DNA from: Schizochytrium sp. TIO01
Lineage: Eukaryota > Protista > Bigyra: Labyrinthulomycetes
DNA length: 64,000 bases
Assembly: GCA_004764695.1 (NCBI GenBank)
Contig: SMSO01000031.1
Span: 100,436-164,435 of the forward strand
Direction of reading: 5' to 3'
The position numbers and the translations under genes were made by a program. Below are positions 49,976 through 62,515 of the stretch, in pieces. Position 1 is the first letter of the stretch, and each line of letters begins with the position of its first letter. The notes below the pieces were generated by a model. The model saw only the letters and a list, made by a program, of their open reading frames with translations, was not told the DNA's origin and searched no databases.

Positions 49976-52900
49976 ATGCCCGGCAACGATGGTTTGCCGC
50001 CTGGCTGGGAGATGTCAATTGACGAAGAGACGGGACGCACGTTTTACATCAATCACAACACCATGCAAACCAGCTGGACACCCCCCGTAGAAGAGCCACT
50101 CCCACCTGGGTGGGAGCAACAACGTGATGGAGAAGGCCGCATCTTCTTCATCAACCACAACACCCAGCAAACTCAGTGGGAGGACCCTCGCCTGTCATTT
50201 GAGGATGCGCCGTCGATCTCGTACCCTTCATTTGATAATGATAACGCACAAAGTAGCGGCCCTGGTTATGATTCTGGCTACTATTCGCAGTCTATGAACA
50301 GTAGCTATGGGGCAGGGGGCAATGTGTCGAGCAACGGCAGTGGCAAGGTGTCCTGCTCTGCATGCACATTTGAGAACTCTCCTTCGGATACCGCTTGCTC
50401 CGTTTGTGGCACAGATCTTCCTAAGACAAATGCCAATAGTGGAGGTAGTAGCTACGAATCTGGCGCAAGAGCTGGCGGTTCCGATGAAATTGATGCTGCC
50501 ACAGCCGCAGCCATCGCTGCTGCACAAGCTGAGGATGAGGCGTACATGTCTCAAACTGGGAGCGCTAACGAGTATATTGAGGTAACAGACCCTCGGGAAT
50601 TGGAGCCCTTTGCTGTACCGGATGAATATTCGATGATTTGTACACTCTGTGCCAAGCCATTTGACTGGAAGAATCGCAAACATCATTGCCGCTGCTCAGG
50701 TGGTCTGTATTGCCAAGACTGTAGCTCACACAAGGTTCGCTTTGCTGTTCGTGGCGAAGACGTCAAGGAGCGCCGTGTGTGCGATATTTGCTTTGAACAC
50801 CAAAATGCTGGTGACCGTCACTGTTATTTGCGGTATATAGGTATTTTACGCGATGCTGGAGGTGCACGCCGCAAAGATCGTTTTCTAGCATTTAAGGGTG
50901 TTGCTCAGATGGTAGAAAGACTTCCCAATGCCATGCAGCCTCACGCTAGCGTTGAGGATCAAGCTATGGCTAGCCGCACGCTACACCAGATTGAGCGTTG
51001 TGGTGGCGCAGCAGCATTTTGCGAGCTTGTGTCCCCGGATAATGAGCGCGAAGCACAGATCGAAAGCTGTCGTGCGGTAGCATGCATGGCCGAGGTCGCA
51101 GCAAGCTCACCAAGCGGAAGTGAGGCATCTCTTTCAAGATCACGCTTGCGTAATGATCTCTCCGAAGGTTCCGTTGCAATGTCTTCAATCGCGAGCATGC
51201 TGCGCCCAGACACACCATGGGAGGCACATATGCATTTGGCCAAAGCATTTTACCTTTTAGGAGATATGTCTGAAATTCAGCTTTCTGTACGCAAAATGAA
51301 TGTGATCGGGCCTCTTTGTGAAGATCTGCTTGCCTCTGAAGAGCAACTGCAAAGCTGGACAGTGCGCGCCATATCGCGTCTCATTGATAACAATGCTGAT
51401 AACGTCGAAGCTATGCTTGAGGCAAACGGCATGCAAGCCCTAGTTCTCTTGCTGACATCCAATGATGACCTTGTCAAGGAGCACGCCACAGCAGCGATTT
51501 GCTCTGGTCTTCAGCTGGAAGTAACTAATCCTGGCCGAGGTGGTATGCTTGCATCTCGAATCCGGGATGCTATAGTAAATTTGGGCGGTACCAGTGCCTC
51601 TGTCGCGCTTCTAGGGTCAAACAATGCAACTGTTGCCCGAAGCGGCTTGCGTTTGATTATGCACCTTTCCAATGGCCAAGCTGAGGTTGTGCGAGCTGCT
51701 GGTGCAGTCCCACTTGTGGTAGCGCTACTTGCAAGTCGTGATAGCGAAATTCAAGCAAGCGCTGCTCAGTTATTGCGAAATATTGCGCAATGCAGTATGG
51801 CAGGCAGTGCTGAGGTTTTGGAGAGCGGTGGCCTTTCAATGACAATTCCACTCTTGGGAGCTCCAGATTCTCAAACACGTAGCAATGCCGCATCCTTGTG
51901 TGAAATCTTCGCTGCTGATGAGCAGGGGTCAACAAACATTATTGAAGCCCATGCGGTGCCGGCTTTAGTTAATCTTGTGCGGGATAGTGACAACTCTGTG
52001 CGAGGACCAGCTGCAGGGACTCTGGTTCAGCTTTTGCAATGCGGATCCCACGAAAAGCAGATTGTAGTTAATGCTGGTGGTGTAGAGGCTCTTCTCGGAC
52101 TTGAGAATAGTTCTGATCCCATGGTTTTGCGCCAGCTCGTTGGCGCAGTGTATTCATTTGTTTCGGACGCCTCGCTGCTGGAAAGTTTATCACGACGCAT
52201 TGCCCCTCCTACTATGGCAATGAAACTTTTAGGCCTTCTTGGAGGACAACACGCACGTTCCTTGGACATGCACACCATCGAGATGCTTCTTCTAGTTGTT
52301 GCAGTTCTTTGTGGCGCTCGCGATGGAGACCAATTGAAGACTGATGCAGAGCTTGCCGAAGCTACACCTACTGAGACTCAGACACGGGACTTGGTTGCAA
52401 GCAATGGCTCACAACTAATCCTTCCCTTGCTTTCATCTTCGCGCGATCAGCCTGCCCTCGTCCTCGCTGTTTTCCGCCTGCTTCTCTCAGTATGCAGCTC
52501 CATGAACGGCGCCACCGCTGTCGCTAAAGCAGGAGGTATCACTGCAGTTGTACGGGCACTTGACGATTCTCTTCATGTCGAGGCCTCCGACGCCGACGCT
52601 GGCAACCTCGTTACACAGCTTCGCCAATATGGAATTGCGCTCTTTGGTCGTTTATGCAGTGGTGGAAACGCCTCCGGGGGTCGTTCTGATACAATCTCCA
52701 CAGCAACTGCTGACGATGTGCGCTATGGTGTCCGTGCCATCACGCGTGTGCTGGATCAACCAAACCATGCTGCATCTGACCACGAGCGTCTCGCGATGCA
52801 ACTGTCAGCTGTACGTGCACTTCGAAGCCTGTCTTTTCACAGTGGAAATTGGGAAGCCATTGCCTCTGTTGCACTGCCTCAGCTGATTGAAATGCTACTG

Positions 52901-55900
52901 AGTAATGACTCTCAATCAACTTTGCTGGCAGACATTGCTTCAGTAATTTCTAACCTTGCTAAATTAGAGAAGCACTCAGACATGGTCCTTGATGCAGGTG
53001 CGGTTTTTGCTCTTCTTGGTTTGCTCTCCGAGAAGGAAGGGGAAGCCGTGGAAGCAGGCTTGCGGACGCTGATTGCCTTAGCGGAATCATCTAAGCGTTG
53101 CCGGTTAGCTATTGTTGACCAAGGTGCTGCACCAAAGCTTTTGCATCTCGCCGAACAACGCGAGTCGCCAATCCCGGAGCTTGCTCTCAAATGTCTTTCC
53201 ACTCTTGCCAAAGAACCTGCTAATGCACCAAAGATCACTGCAGAAACTGGCGCCACAGACTCGCTCTTACGTCTACTTAAATCACCGGACTCCAATGTTT
53301 CAGAACAGGCGATGGAGATTCTGCTTGCCGTTGCTAAAGACAGTGATACACTGTGGCAGCAACTTGTGGTCAATGCGGATATCGAGTCTGCAGTTGCGTT
53401 GCTGAAGCTAGGCCCTCCGCGAGTTCAAGGTCAGGCGTGTTCTACGATTGCAGCTTTGTGTGGAGACTCTCCTGGGTATGCTCTGTGTGCGTCGCCCACA
53501 ATCCTTGAAGTTCTCCCTGTGATCGTGCAGCTTCTGACTCCTCCTGAACACTTCGGTGCAGACAAGTCCGAGTCACCTGCCAAGGAGGCTGCTGCGGCCT
53601 GTGCTCTGCTCTCTGGATCTTCTGTAGCCCGTGAAGCGCTCGTAGCTGCTGGGGTTATCCCGAGTCTGGTGGCGTTGCTTCTGCGTGAGCGTCGCCTAGG
53701 CCGGCCCCGCTCGGCAACATCCGAGCATACTCTTCGTGCTTTGTTTTCTTTGAGTTCGTCTGCTGCTTCTGAGGAAACTTCAGAGCAAGATAGTCCTAAT
53801 CTTTCACTCTGGACAGGTATTCAAAAACTTGGTAAGCGCCGTGATGCTATTGACGCAGTCATCACAATTTTGGATGCTCATATTCGAGACACCACTCCGA
53901 CGCCAAGTGGATGCGACCGCATGGATATATGCGAAGAGGCAGTCGTGTTGCTCGGACGCCTTCCAGGAGCCCTGACTCCGAACGAGGTCACACTTATCGG
54001 ACGATCTGCGCGTTCCATTAACTTGGTGATGGGCGAGGTATGCCCTGAGTCTCTTATGAAGGCATGCTTGCAAACCTTGGGACGCCTCTCAAAGGAACCT
54101 TCGTTAGTGCAGGTTTTGACGGCAGCAGGCACAATCCGTACGGTTTCGCGTCTCTTGGAACCACTTCTTAGCAGCGAAGATACGAGCCAGGATATTCATG
54201 TGGAAGCCAGTGTTACACTTCAAGCGGCCAAACTCATCGCTTCTATCGTACATGATGCCCATGATCGAAGTGTGGATGATGCCATCATCGGTACCAAGGC
54301 CATTCCTGCTTTGGCTGCCCTTCTTACTCGTACTGATGAGTTGTTTCCTGCTCATGAGCATGCTGAAGCTGCTCTTTCTGCAGGGCTTGAAGCCATTGCT
54401 TCACTAGCTCGAGGTGGTCCTGCTGTGCAAAAGGCTATTATGAAAAGTGGTGATAGTGTACTGCCAGCCTTGGCCCAGGTTGTGGATCGTTTTGACCATG
54501 ATGGAGACGAAAGTTTGCCCCGCGCTACATACGCTTTTGTTACGCTATCGCGCCTGGCTACTCTTGGCGAGCATCGGCACGCTATTGTTTCAGCAAAGCC
54601 GAGCTTGACGAATATTGCGTGTCGCGTGTTTGAGTCTACCGAAGATGCAAAACTTGTGCAAGCAGCCACTCAGTTCGTGGCGGATCTCGGTCCGTCAGTG
54701 CTAGATGGCCAAGTTGTTGAGGCGCTTGTATGTAAGGTTATCTCAAATGAGACCTTTTCGAACTCCCGAGGCCCTGCTCTACAGGCGCTGGGAGTTTATG
54801 CAATGGACCCGGCCCTTGGTGAGCAAATGCTAGACCTCGGTATCCTTGACACAGTAATTGATCTTTTGCAAGAGGACAGTCCCGAAGGAAAGCCTGGAGT
54901 CCATGTACGTAGTGCAGCAACTCTCTTGCGTCTTTTGTGTAGCCTTTCTGCAATACGTGGTGTCCAGCCAAAGCAGCCCCATGATTTGAGTAAACCTGCT
55001 GCAAACGGTGCAACAACCGTCAATGGTCAAGACGAAGATTGTGAAAAGGAAGGCGATATGGATGATGAAGCTACTGAGTCTGAGTTGCCAAGCCCTAGTG
55101 CCCCCGAGTCTAACGGAGACAATGAAGCTGCTGCCATGAAAAACCTAGAGCGATCTGTTGATGCCTGCAGCGCTGTAATTCTTGGTGAGAAGAACTACCC
55201 TCCCAGCGTTGTTACTGAAGCACTTCTAGGTTTAAATATGTTGGTGCTGACCAAGGAGGCTCGTGAGCGTGTAGCAAAATTGCCCAAGCTCCTGCAGATG
55301 CTGAAGAGCATAGCAATTAGCGCAGCCTCTGAAACCTTTGCTGCTCAAACGGCTGCGAATGTGGTCCGCTTTATTGGTACAGGCGAGGTTCTAGAACAGG
55401 AAAGGTCTCGTCCTCGTGGTCCTCCGCCCCCGCTTGCTGCAGGAGCTGGTCCTAAATCATCACCTACGTCACCACCACCGCCTGCACCCGGGTCAGTGTC
55501 TTCAAGCGTGTCCTCGCCAGTCTTGAAACCTACGAATGGGTATGCAACTAAGCCTCCTGCACAAGCTTCGACTTTCGCGAGCTCAGCTAGTGTGGCAAGC
55601 AGCAGCAGCTCTAGGCCTGCACCACCGCCTATGATGTCATCCCAAAGTTCCCTTCCCCGTTCTTCACCTCTGATGGCGCCCCGGCAGCCACCATCTGGCC
55701 CTCCTCCACCCATCAGTGGAAGTGCCAACTCAGGTACCTTGCTTCCCACATACAGCAATACTTCTATGAACTCTTCATTCAGGCGCACTCCATCGTCATC
55801 CCAATATACGTCTGGTGGTGGTAACGGTGGTCGCTCGCTATCATCATCCTCATCAACCGCAATGTCTGACGAACAGTATGCCATGCGTCTTCAAGCAGAA

Positions 55901-56218
55901 GAGGATCGCCGTGCTCGTGAGCAACAGGCAAAACGGCCGGCCTCAACTCCTGCACCAGCTGCTCAGCCCAAGGCCTGGTCTTGCAGCAAATGCACATTTG
56001 AAAATGGTTCTGACAAGGCTAAATGCGAAATGTGCGATACAGCACGACCGGGAGGTGCAGGGTCATCGTCGAATGCAGGTGGAGGCGGTTCTACTAGCAA
56101 CTTGGTGCGCGTAAAGTGTCCAAACTGTGGTACTGTACTTGGTGCTCCTTCTGGTGCTCAAATGTTTCAATGTATGCAGTGTCACACTACATCAGCGGTG
56201 AGTGCTCATCGATGTTAG
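49976..56218 (+). CDS. 2xWW - NZF - FYVE - ARM repeats - Pro-rich - MIU - NZF - LSD1-type Zn-finger protein, 2080 aa
   Basis: Two canonical WW domains (LPPGWE...FYINH...W..P), CSACTFEN..C.VC, FYVE RKHHCR...RVCDIC, a long ARM solenoid, SDEQYAMRLQAEE, WSCSKCTFEN...CEMC and CPNCGTVLGAPSGA..FQCMQC. Confidence 0.92.
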   Translation: MPGNDGLPPGWEMSIDEETGRTFYINHNTMQTSWTPPVEEPLPPGWEQQRDGEGRIFFINHNTQQTQWEDPRLSFEDAPSISYPSFDNDNAQSSGPGYDSGYYSQSMNSSYGAGGNVSSNGSGKVSCSACTFENSPSDTACSVCGTDLPKTNANSGGSSYESGARAGGSDEIDAATAAAIAAAQAEDEAYMSQTGSANEYIEVTDPRELEPFAVPDEYSMICTLCAKPFDWKNRKHHCRCSGGLYCQDCSSHKVRFAVRGEDVKERRVCDICFEHQNAGDRHCYLRYIGILRDAGGARRKDRFLAFKGVAQMVERLPNAMQPHASVEDQAMASRTLHQIERCGGAAAFCELVSPDNEREAQIESCRAVACMAEVAASSPSGSEASLSRSRLRNDLSEGSVAMSSIASMLRPDTPWEAHMHLAKAFYLLGDMSEIQLSVRKMNVIGPLCEDLLASEEQLQSWTVRAISRLIDNNADNVEAMLEANGMQALVLLLTSNDDLVKEHATAAICSGLQLEVTNPGRGGMLASRIRDAIVNLGGTSASVALLGSNNATVARSGLRLIMHLSNGQAEVVRAAGAVPLVVALLASRDSEIQASAAQLLRNIAQCSMAGSAEVLESGGLSMTIPLLGAPDSQTRSNAASLCEIFAADEQGSTNIIEAHAVPALVNLVRDSDNSVRGPAAGTLVQLLQCGSHEKQIVVNAGGVEALLGLENSSDPMVLRQLVGAVYSFVSDASLLESLSRRIAPPTMAMKLLGLLGGQHARSLDMHTIEMLLLVVAVLCGARDGDQLKTDAELAEATPTETQTRDLVASNGSQLILPLLSSSRDQPALVLAVFRLLLSVCSSMNGATAVAKAGGITAVVRALDDSLHVEASDADAGNLVTQLRQYGIALFGRLCSGGNASGGRSDTISTATADDVRYGVRAITRVLDQPNHAASDHERLAMQLSAVRALRSLSFHSGNWEAIASVALPQLIEMLLSNDSQSTLLADIASVISNLAKLEKHSDMVLDAGAVFALLGLLSEKEGEAVEAGLRTLIALAESSKRCRLAIVDQGAAPKLLHLAEQRESPIPELALKCLSTLAKEPANAPKITAETGATDSLLRLLKSPDSNVSEQAMEILLAVAKDSDTLWQQLVVNADIESAVALLKLGPPRVQGQACSTIAALCGDSPGYALCASPTILEVLPVIVQLLTPPEHFGADKSESPAKEAAAACALLSGSSVAREALVAAGVIPSLVALLLRERRLGRPRSATSEHTLRALFSLSSSAASEETSEQDSPNLSLWTGIQKLGKRRDAIDAVITILDAHIRDTTPTPSGCDRMDICEEAVVLLGRLPGALTPNEVTLIGRSARSINLVMGEVCPESLMKACLQTLGRLSKEPSLVQVLTAAGTIRTVSRLLEPLLSSEDTSQDIHVEASVTLQAAKLIASIVHDAHDRSVDDAIIGTKAIPALAALLTRTDELFPAHEHAEAALSAGLEAIASLARGGPAVQKAIMKSGDSVLPALAQVVDRFDHDGDESLPRATYAFVTLSRLATLGEHRHAIVSAKPSLTNIACRVFESTEDAKLVQAATQFVADLGPSVLDGQVVEALVCKVISNETFSNSRGPALQALGVYAMDPALGEQMLDLGILDTVIDLLQEDSPEGKPGVHVRSAATLLRLLCSLSAIRGVQPKQPHDLSKPAANGATTVNGQDEDCEKEGDMDDEATESELPSPSAPESNGDNEAAAMKNLERSVDACSAVILGEKNYPPSVVTEALLGLNMLVLTKEARERVAKLPKLLQMLKSIAISAASETFAAQTAANVVRFIGTGEVLEQERSRPRGPPPPLAAGAGPKSSPTSPPPPAPGSVSSSVSSPVLKPTNGYATKPPAQASTFASSASVASSSSSRPAPPPMMSSQSSLPRSSPLMAPRQPPSGPPPPISGSANSGTLLPTYSNTSMNSSFRRTPSSSQYTSGGGNGGRSLSSSSSTAMSDEQYAMRLQAEEDRRAREQQAKRPASTPAPAAQPKAWSCSKCTFENGSDKAKCEMCDTARPGGAGSSSNAGGGGSTSNLVRVKCPNCGTVLGAPSGAQMFQCMQCHTTSAVSAHRC

Positions 56219-57102: not shown

Positions 57103-59919
57103 TTAGGCAATCACACAGCAGCCTTCCGCCTGAGGAGCACCTCCGTTACCAATGGTGGGAAGGTTAAGCGCGCCTTGGCCAATTAGCTTGAGGTTTGCCT
57201 TGTAGGCGGCGCCGTCCACAGCATCGATTGGGTATGAAGAGGAGGTGGTGAGGGGGAGGTCGACACCGACATTTGACAGAACCTCAATCCAATTACGAAC
57301 CTCTGAGATATGAATGTTCTCCATGAGGTAGGTCACCTGGACATTCGGGTCTTCTGGTTTTTTGCCAGGGTACGTGGAAAGTGCAGCAATCCAACCGTCG
57401 TGCTCATTGTATGCAATACTCTCCACCTCTTCGTAGTTAACAAAGTGCTCAGTCTGACGACCCATGGGGTCGTACAGGTAAAGACCCTTGCTACCAACGA
57501 CAAGGAGCAGGGGCACACGCTGGGCCTTGGAGTTGAAGGCGACAACGCGGTCAGCGCCGATGAGACCGTCGTCGGGCGGGAGATACTCAGCTGCACGTTC
57601 CAAGAACTCACGACGAGCATCCTCGATACGCAACAGGTCACGGGCATCCTTGATGAAAACCTTGGTCTTACCCATCTCGTACTTCTTGACACCGCCCTGC
57701 GAGAGAATATAAGTTGTCGCCTTGCGGGTGTCAGGCTGCCAGTGGTCCGTGCCCTGAACGGCGCACTTGAATTTAGCAGCAAACTCATCATAGGTCATGC
57801 GGAAGGCGTATCCGGCACGACGCACAATCAAGTTCTCAGCAATGCCCAAGTAGCGGACCTGGGAAATCACCATGTCGCGTTCAAACATACCAGCGCGCTT
57901 CATTTCGTTGGGCTTGATACAACGAATGTAGTGCTGGTTGTTCTTCTTGAGGGTCTCCATAAGGGCGGCCACAGACTTTTTGTACTGCATGCAGGTCGTA
58001 GGCGGCCGCTTGTTCGTCGTGCGGCTGTCGTCCACAGCTGGGTGACCCTTGAACAACGACTTGGCAACCGGGTTGCGCGAGGTGTGGTAGACCACTTGCA
58101 CAAGATCAGGGAAGAGGGTATCCTTGTTGGAGTCAAGCATACCGTGGGTGTTATATTGGACGACACCAGCATAGTGATGAATCTCAAAGACGCCCGGCTC
58201 AGCACGAGCAGGGACGGAAAACTCGTTCGTGCGAATGTTAGACTGGAACTTCTGGTACAGTGTAGAGTCGTTCGCCTGCGGGAAGATGCTCTGCTCGTCA
58301 ATGAGGGAGAACATACCGCCACGACGGTCGATCAGCTCGACAATAGGGCTGTTATCGAAGAAGTTCACGGGGACCCATGAGATGTTTTCGCGCGCGTACT
58401 CAGCCTGCTCTCCCTTGAGGGTGAGCTCGATGAAGAGCGCATGGAGCTTCTCGTTGGTGTAGTTGATGCAAAGCTGCTCAAAGCCGTTCACACCAAGGAT
58501 CTCAAAACCATAAATATCCAAGACACCAATGCACGTGGAGAACTGATCTGTGTGGATGGTCTCGTTACAGCGAGTTACAATATAGTCAAAAAGACGACCG
58601 TAGAGGGATTTAGCTAGCGAGTCGCGAGCAAAGGCGGCCTTTTCGGCATTGAGGCCAGTCCGCACGCTCTCAGAGGCGGACTTTACGGTACGGTGCGTAA
58701 GCGCAGTCTGAAGATCCTGCTCGTTGACGCCGAGTAGAGATGCGGCTTGGGAAAGGGCCTGGTGATTGTCAACCTGAGAAGTGTCGCGTCCCTTAGGGCT
58801 GAAGGTGACGTTACCGAGGTGCAAGATACCACCGAGGATGGAGAAGATGGCGGCCTGCTCCTCGCCCTTCATGCCGATAAACTCCATCGCCTTGCTTGTG
58901 TCAGAAAAGTCACTGCCATCATCGATGCTACGCACAGAAGCTGAGGAGGGGTCTGAAAGGTAGTTGAAGTCGCCAGCGCTGGAGGATAAGCCAAGTTGAG
59001 AGCGAGCACGGCTGTCACTCAAAAGCTGGTAGAAAATATGAAAGTTGCGCTCACCCTCTTGCTGCAAAGTCACACGGGTCTTCTCCAGAAGATAAGTGGA
59101 GATGGAACCACCACTGGGGTCACCATACAGAAAGTTAATGGCGAAGTATTTACCGAAACGAGAAGAGTTATCATTTCGGCGAGTCTTGGCGTTACCAAAG
59201 GCCTCGAGAAGCTGTATTGTTTAGAATTCATATGAATTAAAGTAAGGACACGTATAAGTTAGTTCGATGATCATGCGTCTCTCCATTCTCCTTGGCATGG
59301 AGTGTTGTATTCTTAAGCCCCTTGCCCCCAACACTGCACCTGCCACCTCCACAGTTCCTATTTCCTTAGCCTGTGCTTGTTTGTAGCAGCGCCCCGTTTC
59401 CTGCAACTCGCCGATATAGTTTATTTGGCTTTTCTTTAATACAGAATTCAACTGTCCGTCTGTACATCTATTTTTATGTAGTCTTTAACGTACCGGGTTG
59501 GTCTGGAGTAGCTCCTCCTTAATGTGCTGTACCTGCTTGGATTTGCTGGCCATGGCCGCGACGTACTCCATGACGGTCTTGGATGCCTCCGTCTTACCGG
59601 CACCAGACTCACCAGTAATGATAACACACTCGTTGGAGGTGTTGAGCATCATCGAGCGGTAAGCCATTTCTGCGATTCCGTATACATGTGGAGAGCGCTC
59701 GTAAAGCTTCTTGGACACATAGGAGCGGATCTTGCTTTGGCCGTAGAGCCCATTGATCATGTGATACGGGTTCACCACCAGGAGCACCTCTCCGATATAG
59801 GTGTAAATTTCATCGGCACGGTGCCTTGCTGCGAGGGCCTCAACGATCTCATCCTCCGTCGACCCGTCGAGGAGAACGAGATCATTCACAACTCCACTCT
59901 TGGCGCCACGGTACGACAT
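57103..59919 (-). CDS. Class I-type myosin with a short TH1/PH-like tail and C-terminal CaaX. Exon 1 59919..59494, exon 2 59211..57103, 844 aa
   Basis: IYTYIG.VL.VVNPY, P-loop GESGAGKT, spliced TNP|[63 protein letters not shown]...RRAGYA (class I style), GKTKVFI. Ends GCCVIA-stop. Confidence 0.95.
59212..59493 (-). other. Spliceosomal GT-AG intron (282 nt, phase 0) in the myosin gene
   Basis: Donor CCG|GTACGT, branch-like ACTAAC near 59250, acceptor TACAG|CTT. Removing it restores the conserved [12 protein letters not shown]. Confidence 0.93.
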
Positions 59920-59987: not shown

Positions 59988-60169
59988 CCCTGCCCCTGTA
60001 GCAGCCGCAGTAAACCCGGCACCAGGCGGGAGCACGCACGAGCAGTCAATTGACTCTTCCCTGCTTCGCAACCTGGGAGGACCTGCACAACCTGCCTTAC
60101 GCAGACTTAGCCAGCAAGCCAGCCAGCCAGCTCGCCCGTCGACCGACTGACCGACCGACTGTCAGGGTC

Positions 60170-60170
<1 letters not shown>

Positions 60171-60210
<40 letters not shown>
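60171..60210. repeat. (GCAA)10 microsatellite
   Basis: Visible directly. Confidence 0.95.
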
Positions 60211-60394
60211 TTAGTTAGTTAAGTTAGCTCTTTGCTGATGCCAGAAGTCGCCCATGTGCAAACCTCATCACCGCTCGACTTACACTTTATGCCAAAGTTA
60301 AACCCAACTCGACAGCTTCTTCTTCTAAACCTGCCTAGCAAACCACCACCGCCACCTGGAAGTCAGCCATTCAGCCCTAGAGTGTGTGTCAGTG

Positions 60395-60469
60395 GAGAGA
60401 GAGAGTGAGCGAGTGAGTGAGTGAGCGAGTGTGAGTGAGAGTGAGTGAGAGTGAATGAGTGAGCGAGTG
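60395..60469. repeat. (GAGT/GAGC)n degenerate microsatellite
   Basis: Visible directly; a similar tract lies at 62516..62600. Confidence 0.85.
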
Positions 60470-62515
60470 CGATCGACGGTCAGAGCACCTCAGAGTGGAC
60501 GGAAAACAAGCACGCACGCTCCTCATTTCGCCTATCTGACTCCTACGTGCACGTGTTTTGCAAGCGCTTGCTTCCTCATCAATCATTATAAACAACCAAG
60601 AATAAAAAAACGTTTTAGCGTGGAAAAGGGGCAAAAGCAGAAGAGAATATGATTATGCATGTACACGTTCAACTTGCAACACGCAGGCGAAGCGAAGGAC
60701 TGGGCTTTCTTTCACCTCAGGCAGACAGCCAACAAAGAAACAAAGAAACAAACGAAGAAAGCAAGAGACAGACGCAAGCCAGGAAAGAGGGCTCCCGCGA
60801 GTCAGAGGCAACTTCTGCCGACCTTTCATTGAGTAACAACTCGGGTGAAAACGCAAGTTGAAGCAATTGCCCGCCCATAAAAAAAACAATTAAAAATGCA
60901 ATAAATGGTCAAGCGCGTTCAGGTTTCATGAAATGATACCTTCAAGCTGCTCAATATTCCAAAGCGAGTGGGGAGAACTCGGCCGCAAGAGCTCAGGCCT
61001 TGGCAGGTGCTGAGGTCTGCACGAATGGCGAGAGCTGCAGCAGAAGAGACCTCGAGGAACTTGAAGAAGACTTACTTGGAGGTCCAAGTTGAGACGAAGC
61101 AGAAGTCGGAGAGGAAATAGGTTTTCCAACACTTTTCACTTTCTTTTTCTTTTCTTTTTTTCTTCTTTTGGGATGAAAATAGTATAAGTTGTTGAACGAG
61201 AGATTGAAGCAAACATCATCATCAATTCAAGTTTGCACAGAAAGGCTTTGTTCAAGAAACGGCTGGGCTTGGAGAGCTCAAGGTGCGTGGGAGGAAACTG
61301 CTGTGGTTGTTGGCTGCTGGTAGACAGCTAGCTATCAGAGGCCTGGGAAACGAATCGAATGAAGGTACCTGCGAAGCAGACCTTGTTTTTTTAACCCGAG
61401 ATAGATTGAACATCATCGTGAAAGTTTCCAAACTAATGGTAGTTTTTAAGAGAAAGGCGAAAGGGAATGTACCTACAATTCATCGCATTACTACCCACGC
61501 CAGATCCTTTCGACGGAGGCTTTCAAGCTTAAGTTGCTCTGGATCATACTGCAAAGCGGTTTGGCCTTCGTGGCAGCAGATAGCCATCCTCGTGAGACCT
61601 GCGTTTCCCCTTCATTCCTTAGAAGCAGTTTCCCTCCATTCTGCCCAAGAGAGAAACTTTCATCGATCAAGTTTCCTCATTCGTCAACCTGAGCTTGAAC
61701 TGGCAAAGAAGATAAACTAAAGTACTGTCTTATGCAAAGAAACAAACTCGAACAAACACTTTTGAGGCAGAAAATTATAATATACCTAATAAACAACTTG
61801 GACGTCGAGAAAAGCTCCTACGAAAGTGAACAAGACAGATTTAGACCTTGAAATGCGAGCTGCTTGCCGCAGTCTCAGGCAAGCGCTGCAAAGCCGTCGT
61901 CGGATCAAACAATGGGTGCTTGGCGGTGCACATTGTTCCAGTAGCTGCACCAAGGCCACGCAAAGATGCATCCGTCGCCACCGATGAGTTCGAGCTTATT
62001 ATTTATTGCCAGTGCTGCTTTAAAGATGGGCGAGATCGCCAAGCGCGTGCAGCTGGGCGTGCGCCACTGTCTCGCGCAGGATGAACGGTTAATGACAGAA
62101 CCAACGCAGGAACGGAGAGCCACCACGACCATCGATGCATACCCACCCATCCACCATATCTGGGCCGCACGCATCATCGCGCACGAAGGAGCTAGCTCAC
62201 ATTGACATGGAGTAGTTGGCTGCGCACGTGAATCAGGGCCAGAAGCACCGTTGTTGTGATGCCAATGGCGGTTCTCCGCTCTCGACGGACTCGACCCCGT
62301 ACCGCGAGCTCGATACAAACTTGGGCGACTGATGCGGTGCTCGGTTTCTTCGAAGGATCGATGCGAGCCCAAATTGGGTGCCAAGCCACAGCTCTGCAGC
62401 AAACTCGTCGAGGGGGGATGCAAATGCAAGGGAGATCAAATGACGACGGCGATTCAACGGAGATCCCATGAAGCAGAAAGCGCCAGATTGGGGCGTGCGT
62501 AGGTACCCACTGCCA

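Follow-up and report, generated by a model that had tools for sequence, protein, structure and literature searches.

The window analysed here is a stretch of 64,000 nucleotides from Schizochytrium sp. TIO01, corresponding to positions 100436-164435 of its contig in an assembly of 64 Mb and 37 contigs. The sequence and the listing of open reading frames (ORFs) between 56900 and 60800 showed a minus-strand gene with two exons (59919-59494 and 59211-57103), which encodes a myosin of 844 amino acids (aa). We interpreted it, with good confidence, as a class I myosin of a conserved subfamily, in which a motor without IQ motifs is probably combined with a PH-like domain derived from the TH1 core and a Ras-like two-signal lipid anchor. 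The features of the gene are collected in Table 1.

The two exons were searched separately, and a protein from the Aurantiochytrium transcriptome (Marine Microbial Eukaryote Transcriptome Sequencing Project, MMETSP), P0001 of 843 aa, was used as the stand-in for the full-length product; the exons were summed for codon counts only. The Pfam Myosin_head profile (PF00063) was continuous across the splice (133|134), running from 1 to 133 in exon 1 and from 134 to 679 in exon 2, which argued that the splice is exact. The same junction was present in P0001 and in P0002 of Hondaea. P0001 matched exon 2 without a difference over 702 residues, the terminal GCCVIA among them. The sole difference over the 844 residues was one Val missing from P0001 (Val-10/11 in exon 1, 59890-59892): the genome reads SGVVNDL and the MMETSP protein SGVNDL, and Hondaea also has VV. 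The gene is real and transcribed. In the whole assembly, Myosin_head gave 67 matches at about 50 places, many being exons of one gene.

On the minus strand, 57120-57103 reads tgc tgt gtg att gcc taa. A preliminary description of the locus had placed a CCVIA-stop ending at 57103-57120. These coordinates were exact, and C-V-I-A before the TAA was confirmed as the C-terminus, as far as a transcriptome assembly can show this, by P0001, which ends identically. Introns can hide in eukaryotic genes, and the preliminary description was based on one ORF, so that a missed intron or an assembly error might hide a tail extended by IQ or further domains. On the other hand, the independent transcriptome protein stops at the same residue, about 20 homologues from other organisms share both the length range (811-862 aa) and the end, and a genome search with the tail found no second copy or paralogue of it. 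An error of this kind at the 3' end was judged extremely unlikely.

Table 1. Features of the IQ-less myosin gene, in window coordinates
Feature	Position	Strand	Content	Basis or remark
Exon 1	59494..59919	-	142 aa, starts MSYRGAKSG; start codon at 59919; N-terminal motor part	Pfam Myosin_head profile 1-133, E 1.1e-44
P-loop	59590-59613	-	GESGAGKT	in exon 1
Loop 1	59524-59550	-	9 residues, ASKSKQVQH	in exon 1
Intron	59212..59493	-	282 nt, GTACGT...ACAG (GT..AG), GC 0.42	in-frame stop if read through
Exon 2	57103..59211	-	702 aa + TAA	
Motor part of exon 2	57649..59211	-	residues 143-663, to converter GKTKVFIK	Pfam Myosin_head profile 134-679, E 2.3e-172
TEDS-rule site	58669-58671	-	Glu-323	16 residues ahead of DSLAK
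Post-converter helix	57586..57645	-	residues 665-684	tail model helix 16-35; motif comparison
Segment at canonical first-IQ position	57565..57585	-	residues 685-691, YLPPDDG; breaks the helix	alignment and tail model
PH-like domain	57271..57564	-	residues 692-789	AlphaFold pLDDT mostly >90; Foldseek/VIA PH superfold; clade-tail profile
Short ordered C-terminal extension	57160..57270	-	residues 790-826, conserved SSS-YPxDAxD..YK	strand 147-149 and helices 155-168 in the model
Flexible, disordered Gly-rich linker	57121..57159	-	residues 827-839 (disordered stretch of about 15-20 residues)	low pLDDT; varies among orthologues
C-terminal signal	57103..57120	-	CCVIA + TAA; Cys-841 predicted farnesyl acceptor, Cys-840 predicted palmitoyl acceptor	sequence

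In the canonical class I myosins of the hit set, the first IQ motif (pattern IQxxxRGxxxR; examples IQKAYRAFKAR and IQKTWRGYVAR) begins exactly 30 residues after the G of GKTKxFI. In the window protein, in which the V of GKTKVFIKD falls on position 57660, this site is occupied by YLPPDDG. Every close relative has (A)(A/S)xxLPxxDGLIxADKV there, as the window protein does, and LPxxDG is conserved in the clade. No match to the Pfam IQ profile (PF00612) was obtained with either exon, and no IQ-like pattern was seen anywhere in the tail, as the preliminary description had noted. IQ was also absent from all 26 full-length members of the clade. In the AlphaFold model, the helix that follows the converter (tail residues 16-35) ends at a Pro-Pro turn.

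The position at the lever's base was filled without a deletion (FIK-D-A-R), with Ala in place of Pro. This Pro occurred in 12 of the 25 clade members with a recognised motif and in each canonical row that was inspected. After the converter G remained 189 residues, including the folded PH-like domain. The TEDS site is acidic, being Glu-323 in the window protein and Glu in most of its clade. Loop 1 is only 9 residues long and carries no insert, in agreement with the earlier remark that the loop-1 insert of Dictyostelium MyoK was not seen here.

The 195-aa tail was aligned with 27 homologues and modelled with AlphaFold (model mf8154f088a9b; mean pLDDT 86.9, predicted template-modelling score 0.80). 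The modelled tail comprised seven strands, a C-terminal helix (128-140) and one further helix, plus a small extension. The final 18 or so residues had pLDDT below 50, the last two blocks scoring 49 and then 39. The linker varied among orthologues in both length and sequence, and the last five residues were conserved.

Foldseek searches of the Protein Data Bank with this model returned PH-superfold structures, among them hSac2 (E 1.6e-6), the Myosin-1c tail 4R8G (E 2.5e-5), and the PH domains of dynamin and FAPP1. In VIA-align, many PH, PTB and FERM-F3 domains gave Z scores of 8.5-10, and the Myosin-1c tail gave Z 8.8 (root-mean-square deviation 3.2 over 114 residues). Because the scores across the superfold were tied, the structure alone identifies the domain only as PH-like.

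Sequence profiles took the assignment further. Run against a set of 162 proteins, a hidden Markov model of the clade tails matched canonical class I myosins in their TH1 regions, with E values down to 5e-11, and precomputed Pfam TH1 matches existed for the clade members P0019, P0023 and P0025. With the window tail alone, Pfam TH1 (PF06017) scored 13.5 bits (E 0.057), the cut-off being 31.1. In the canonical proteins the TH1 match begins some 60-150 residues past the IQ, which suggested that the tail is a truncated TH1 core. A feature search of the tail in a protein atlas gave TH1 clusters as best matches (0.78-0.83); this lies below the level of evidence and served as a lead only. Judged from the profiles, the PH-like domain and the TH1 core of myosins are homologous, and the preliminary description of this piece was correct.

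To the C-terminal side of this domain, a C-a-a-X end was found in 27 of 29 clade sequences, fragments included, and its Cys was conserved in at least 90% of the alignment rows. Residues a1 and a2 were aliphatic or small, and X was nearly always compatible with prenyltransferases, being A, S, Q, T, C, M or N in most and L in three. X = A, S, M, Q or C directs farnesylation, and geranylgeranylation is expected with X = L. In Ras proteins, farnesylation cooperates with a second membrane signal, which is either a nearby Cys or a polybasic stretch.

Both kinds of second signal were represented in the clade. An additional Cys 1-3 residues before the CaaX Cys (CC, CQC, CNC or CANC) was present in all 19 closer members, which form a subclade with a support of 100/100, and in none of the 8 distant ones. 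In all 8 distant members a polybasic stretch, such as that in KKRSKCSIM, took the place of the extra Cys. Over the 12 upstream residues, net charge averaged +3.1 in the distant, polybasic members and +1.3 in the closer, CC-type ones. That a polybasic stretch stands in for the second Cys argued for selection on membrane anchoring as the function of this C-terminus. The same genome encodes prenyltransferase beta subunits (PF00432) at 3 loci, alpha-subunit PPTA repeats (PF01239) at three loci, the methyltransferase ICMT (PF04140) at 1 locus, and DHHC enzymes (PF01529) at no fewer than 13 loci. The comparative evidence for a lipid anchor at the C-terminus is good, and we infer one on this basis. 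In four SH3-ended myosins (P0143, P0149, P0159 and P0161), endings such as ...CVEV and ...CQEI were rejected as CaaX boxes and regarded as chance C-x-x-x.

Instead of an anchor, the CaaX-like end might be an unused sequence with an incidental terminal Cys, on a soluble short-tailed myosin I that reaches the membrane through its PH-like domain alone. Lipidation has so far been predicted from sequence only, and in other class I myosins the TH1/PH regions attach to acidic phospholipids unaided (PMC3708727). However, the box lies at the exact C-terminus in nearly all clade sequences from three eukaryotic supergroups, with aliphatic or small residues at a1 and a2 and nearly always a compatible X. 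Its last five residues are conserved behind a variable, disordered linker, and the alternation of Cys and polybasic stretch has no obvious explanation besides membrane anchoring. We considered an unused CaaX end unlikely.

Relatives were collected by word searches and a scan of C-termini. P0001-P0019, P0021, P0023-P0028 and P0040 all lacked IQ and all ended in C-a-a-X. The databases named as sources labyrinthulomycetes (Aurantiochytrium, Hondaea fermentalgiana and Aplanochytrium), Amoebozoa (Thecamoeba quadrilineata and Stygamoeba) and Rhizaria (Paulinella chromatophora and P. micropora, with an extra FYVE domain); many further members came from metagenome or transcriptome contigs. Among 1.84 billion representatives (50% identity), a profile search matched motor and tail together in only about 6; the family is small in sequence space and wide in taxonomy.

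The CC-aaX subclade consisted of labyrinthulomycete and metagenome or transcriptome sequences, apart from two. These were P0004, labelled Durusdinium trenchii and 60% identical to window exon 2, and P0018, labelled Batrachochytrium salamandrivorans BASA81. Their placement could reflect contamination, mislabelling or a broader host range of the family.

A maximum-likelihood tree was built from 60 motor domains and 646 columns under LG+C20 PMSF, with two other-class motors of the same genome as outgroup. It omitted the fragments P0006, P0007, P0020, P0033 and P0040, near-duplicates, the long-branch own_L008 and most vertebrate isoforms. The class-I-like rows all split from the two other-class motors at 100/99. 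The IQ-less clade was supported at 100/100 and joined the IQ- and TH1-containing myosins P0029 (Capsaspora), P0030 and P0042 at 100/99. On this tree the window motor is nested within class I, where the preliminary description had put it. The subclass 'Myosin Ik' was considered as a place for the window clade and rejected; it is defined as holozoan, with weaker support for Thecamonas (Sebe-Pedros et al. 2014), and its name is unrelated to MyoK. The Capsaspora sister P0029 may belong to it.

Dictyostelium MyoK is farnesylated (PMC3022777). In PMC3708727 it is described as lacking a tail, carrying a TH2-like insert and being phosphorylated at its TEDS site by PakB. The D. discoideum protein was not in the top-120 lists of word searches with window exon 2 or with the Thecamoeba member P0021. 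In the tree it was represented by its D. purpureum counterpart P0293, obtained from the profile search of representatives. P0293 (852 aa) has a 134-residue Gly/Pro/Arg insert in loop 1, a tail of about 50 aa that ends in KPKCIIQ, and Thr at the TEDS site.

A second CaaX myosin was observed in the same genome (locus L009, 842-3133; contig C34, about 1305925-1308133, plus strand), equal to Aurantiochytrium P0343. It is a single-exon ORF of 735 aa without IQ, has about 50 residues past the converter, and ends in GGGCCIIS. Its TEDS residue is Ser (RRAS*VV), as in Hondaea P0308.

P0293 grouped at 100/99 with the tail-less thraustochytrid proteins P0308 and P0343, and its short tail aligned with that of L009 (IDPIGY and LDPVGY). 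By this grouping, the MyoK type of myosin also occurs outside Amoebozoa. The MyoK-type group lay within a 100/99 set with long-tailed Myo1e/f-like myosins, apart from the window clade. When it was forced together with the window clade, the cost was 108.8 log-likelihood units (p 1.05e-6, approximately unbiased (AU) test).

These results bear on whether the window gene is the thraustochytrid orthologue of MyoK, descended with it from one ancestral farnesylated neckless myosin. Such an origin would account for the lack of IQ, the class I motor and the CaaX end of both, together with the farnesylation of MyoK (PMC3022777). However, the closest partner of P0293 in this genome is another gene, the joint clade was rejected, and the TEDS residue is Thr or Ser in the MyoK type versus Glu in the window protein. 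Orthology with MyoK was considered very unlikely, and the CaaX end of the window clade is most simply read as independent of MyoK's.

The convergence with MyoK proposed in the preliminary description held in so far as the two are separate lineages. The local invention that it implied did not, the architecture being ancestral to a clade with members in Amoebozoa and Rhizaria. Nor could the great rarity claimed for lipid-anchor-type neckless myosins be maintained, considering the 27 IQ-less CaaX members and the MyoK-type CCIIS myosin of the same genome. P0057, a 964-aa protein from a Logan contig, added a third, separate type of CaaX myosin I. It is a class I myosin with normal IQ and Pfam TH1 and a polybasic CaaX end (SKARRGCVIS), and lay outside both CaaX clades in the tree.

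Compared with MyoK (Myo1G of Kollmar 2006), the window protein shares the class I motor, the lack of IQ, the C-terminal CaaX and the proposed attachment through a lipid anchor that replaces or accompanies the binding of lipids. The two differ in lineage, with P0293 as the stand-in for MyoK in the test. In MyoK, loop 1 carries a TH2-like insert of roughly 134-140 aa, there is hardly any tail, and the Thr at the TEDS site is under the control of PakB (PMC3708727). The window protein has a short loop 1, a tail of about 190 aa with the PH-like domain, and a TEDS Glu.

We propose the following scheme for the window protein. Farnesyltransferase would farnesylate Cys-841, as expected from X = Ala. 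The -VIA tripeptide would then be cut off, the Cys would be methylated by the ICMT of the genome, and a DHHC enzyme would palmitoylate the adjacent Cys-840. With the resulting two-signal, Ras-like anchor the tail would stay attached to a membrane, the plasma membrane or an endocytic one being the likeliest. The motor would pull on cortical actin through a very short, light-chain-free lever made of the helix and the packed PH-like domain. Its role would be to tether or to generate tension, with a short working stroke, and not to transport. The PH-like domain may be the rigid end of the lever, an accessory binder of lipid or protein, or both. The Glu at the TEDS site implies that no heavy-chain phosphorylation of the PAK type would be needed, unlike in MyoK.

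The best-supported reading is a membrane-anchored, constitutively activatable class I motor with a very short lever, working at the interface of membrane and cortex. Prenylation, palmitoylation and light-chain independence are put forward as plausible only. A function specific to the ectoplasmic net, as suggested in the preliminary description, is unlikely, because the clade also occurs in Thecamoeba, Stygamoeba and Paulinella; the protein may nevertheless have a role there.

Several observations weigh against this interpretation. The structural matches were to the generic PH superfold, with tied scores, and the link to TH1 rests on sequence profiles. The PH-like core lacks a full phosphoinositide signature (K-Xn-(K/R)-X-R), conservation in the beta1-beta2 hairpin being limited to K55 and R58 (tail-model numbering). 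A light chain could bind to the remaining 20-residue helix, although it is not an IQ. CaaX is missing from two clade members, the gene prediction P0022 and the partial record P0037. Several members came from metagenome or transcriptome contigs, and two of them carry doubtful organism labels. No experimental evidence of lipidation was found for any clade member.

A strong C/G third-position bias had been taken at first as a sign of high expression. The bias was real, the GC content at third codon positions (GC3) being 0.654 and A-ending codons 7.6%. The ten other window ORFs of at least 350 aa had GC3 of 0.38-0.55. In seven other myosin motors of the genome GC3 was 0.44-0.63, with 7.3-20.1% of A-ending codons. 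The values were 0.82 and 1.3% for actin, and 0.76-0.80 and 0.7-1.4% for beta-tubulin. The bias of the window myosin was thus the highest of the eight myosins sampled, yet intermediate. Together with the presence of the transcript in a transcriptome, this moderate bias suggests fairly good expression; high expression was weakly supported.

Actin itself was found at five loci with an equal Pfam score of 487.8 bits (C36:63614-64732, C31:7107315-7108433, C30:5328134-5329252, C30:1633472-1634590 and C8:31573-32691). The equal scores suggested that the assembly contains several identical or near-identical actin copies.

In the window, the myosin gene has a convergent neighbour at 49976-56218 on the plus strand, a single ORF of 2080 aa with GC3 of 0.43. 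By eye, this protein combines two N-terminal WW-like motifs and a long ARM/HEAT-like middle with Cys-rich, zinc-finger-like segments close to either end. Upstream of the myosin start codon, in the presumed promoter or 5' untranslated region, microsatellite-like runs were seen at 60160-60215 and 60385-60470, consisting (in the minus reading) of (TTGC)n and CTCACTCA-type repeats.

The gene had already been predicted in public data, as the 'Unconventional myosin-Ia' of Hondaea and as the MMETSP transcript, and these sequences may already be held in specialist databases. A literature search on CaaX, prenylated, thraustochytrid or ectoplasmic-net myosins found no description of the IQ-less clade. 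The main texts of four papers on myosin classification (PMC3942036, PMC2375034, PMC5583752 and PMC1634994) did not mention CaaX or farnesyl, except for one methods line in PMC1634994 on the prediction of prenyl-group binding motifs. The subfamily is conserved and little described, and apparently undescribed as such.

Class I myosins are the textbook linkers of membranes to actin. They are thought to need light chains of the calmodulin type for the lever and, for attachment, electrostatic binding of the TH1 or PH region to lipids. The short-tailed members with IQ and TH1 (vertebrate Myo1a-d/g/h, Dictyostelium MyoA/E/F; structure 4R8G) share with the window protein the class I motor, the TH1-core homology and the presumed job of connecting the membrane to cortical actin. 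The window protein differs from them in having no IQ or light-chain site, in the absence of about 60 N-terminal residues of TH1, in a Pfam TH1 score below the cut-off (13.5 versus 31.1 bits), in the added CaaX, and in the change of the lever-base Pro to Ala.

The proposed anchor resembles those of Ras proteins, which combine farnesyl with palmitoyl (H-Ras, N-Ras and yeast Ras2, CCIIS) or with a polybasic stretch (K-Ras4B). As in the Ras hypervariable region, a disordered linker is followed by a Cys-CaaX end, and the second signal in the subfamily is an extra Cys or a basic cluster. Unlike in Ras, the putative anchor is on a motor protein and not on a GTPase, and its lipidation is predicted. 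A precedent for lipid-anchored motors is KinesinCaaX of Trypanosoma brucei, a cytoskeletal motor whose C-terminal CaaX was shown to be farnesylated (PMC3206815). It differs in being a microtubule motor, unrelated in sequence and found in kinetoplastids only.

On a wider scale, we propose tentatively, with the case standing just short of even, that the clade is an ancient, unrecognised subclass within class I, with members in Stramenopiles, Rhizaria and Amoebozoa. Such a subclass would have dispensed with the calmodulin-binding neck and would use a Ras-type anchor and a PH-like module. Lipid anchors would then have been gained by class I myosins at least twice, in this clade and in the MyoK type, with a palmitoyl second signal in both in labyrinthulomycetes. 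MyoK itself is no oddity: thraustochytrids have MyoK-type genes, and beside these stands another, independent lineage with CaaX. The predictions are directly testable in Aurantiochytrium, which is in industrial use and open to genetic work. If they are true, the family would be a natural experiment on how short a working myosin I lever can be, and on permanent versus reversible anchoring to the membrane.

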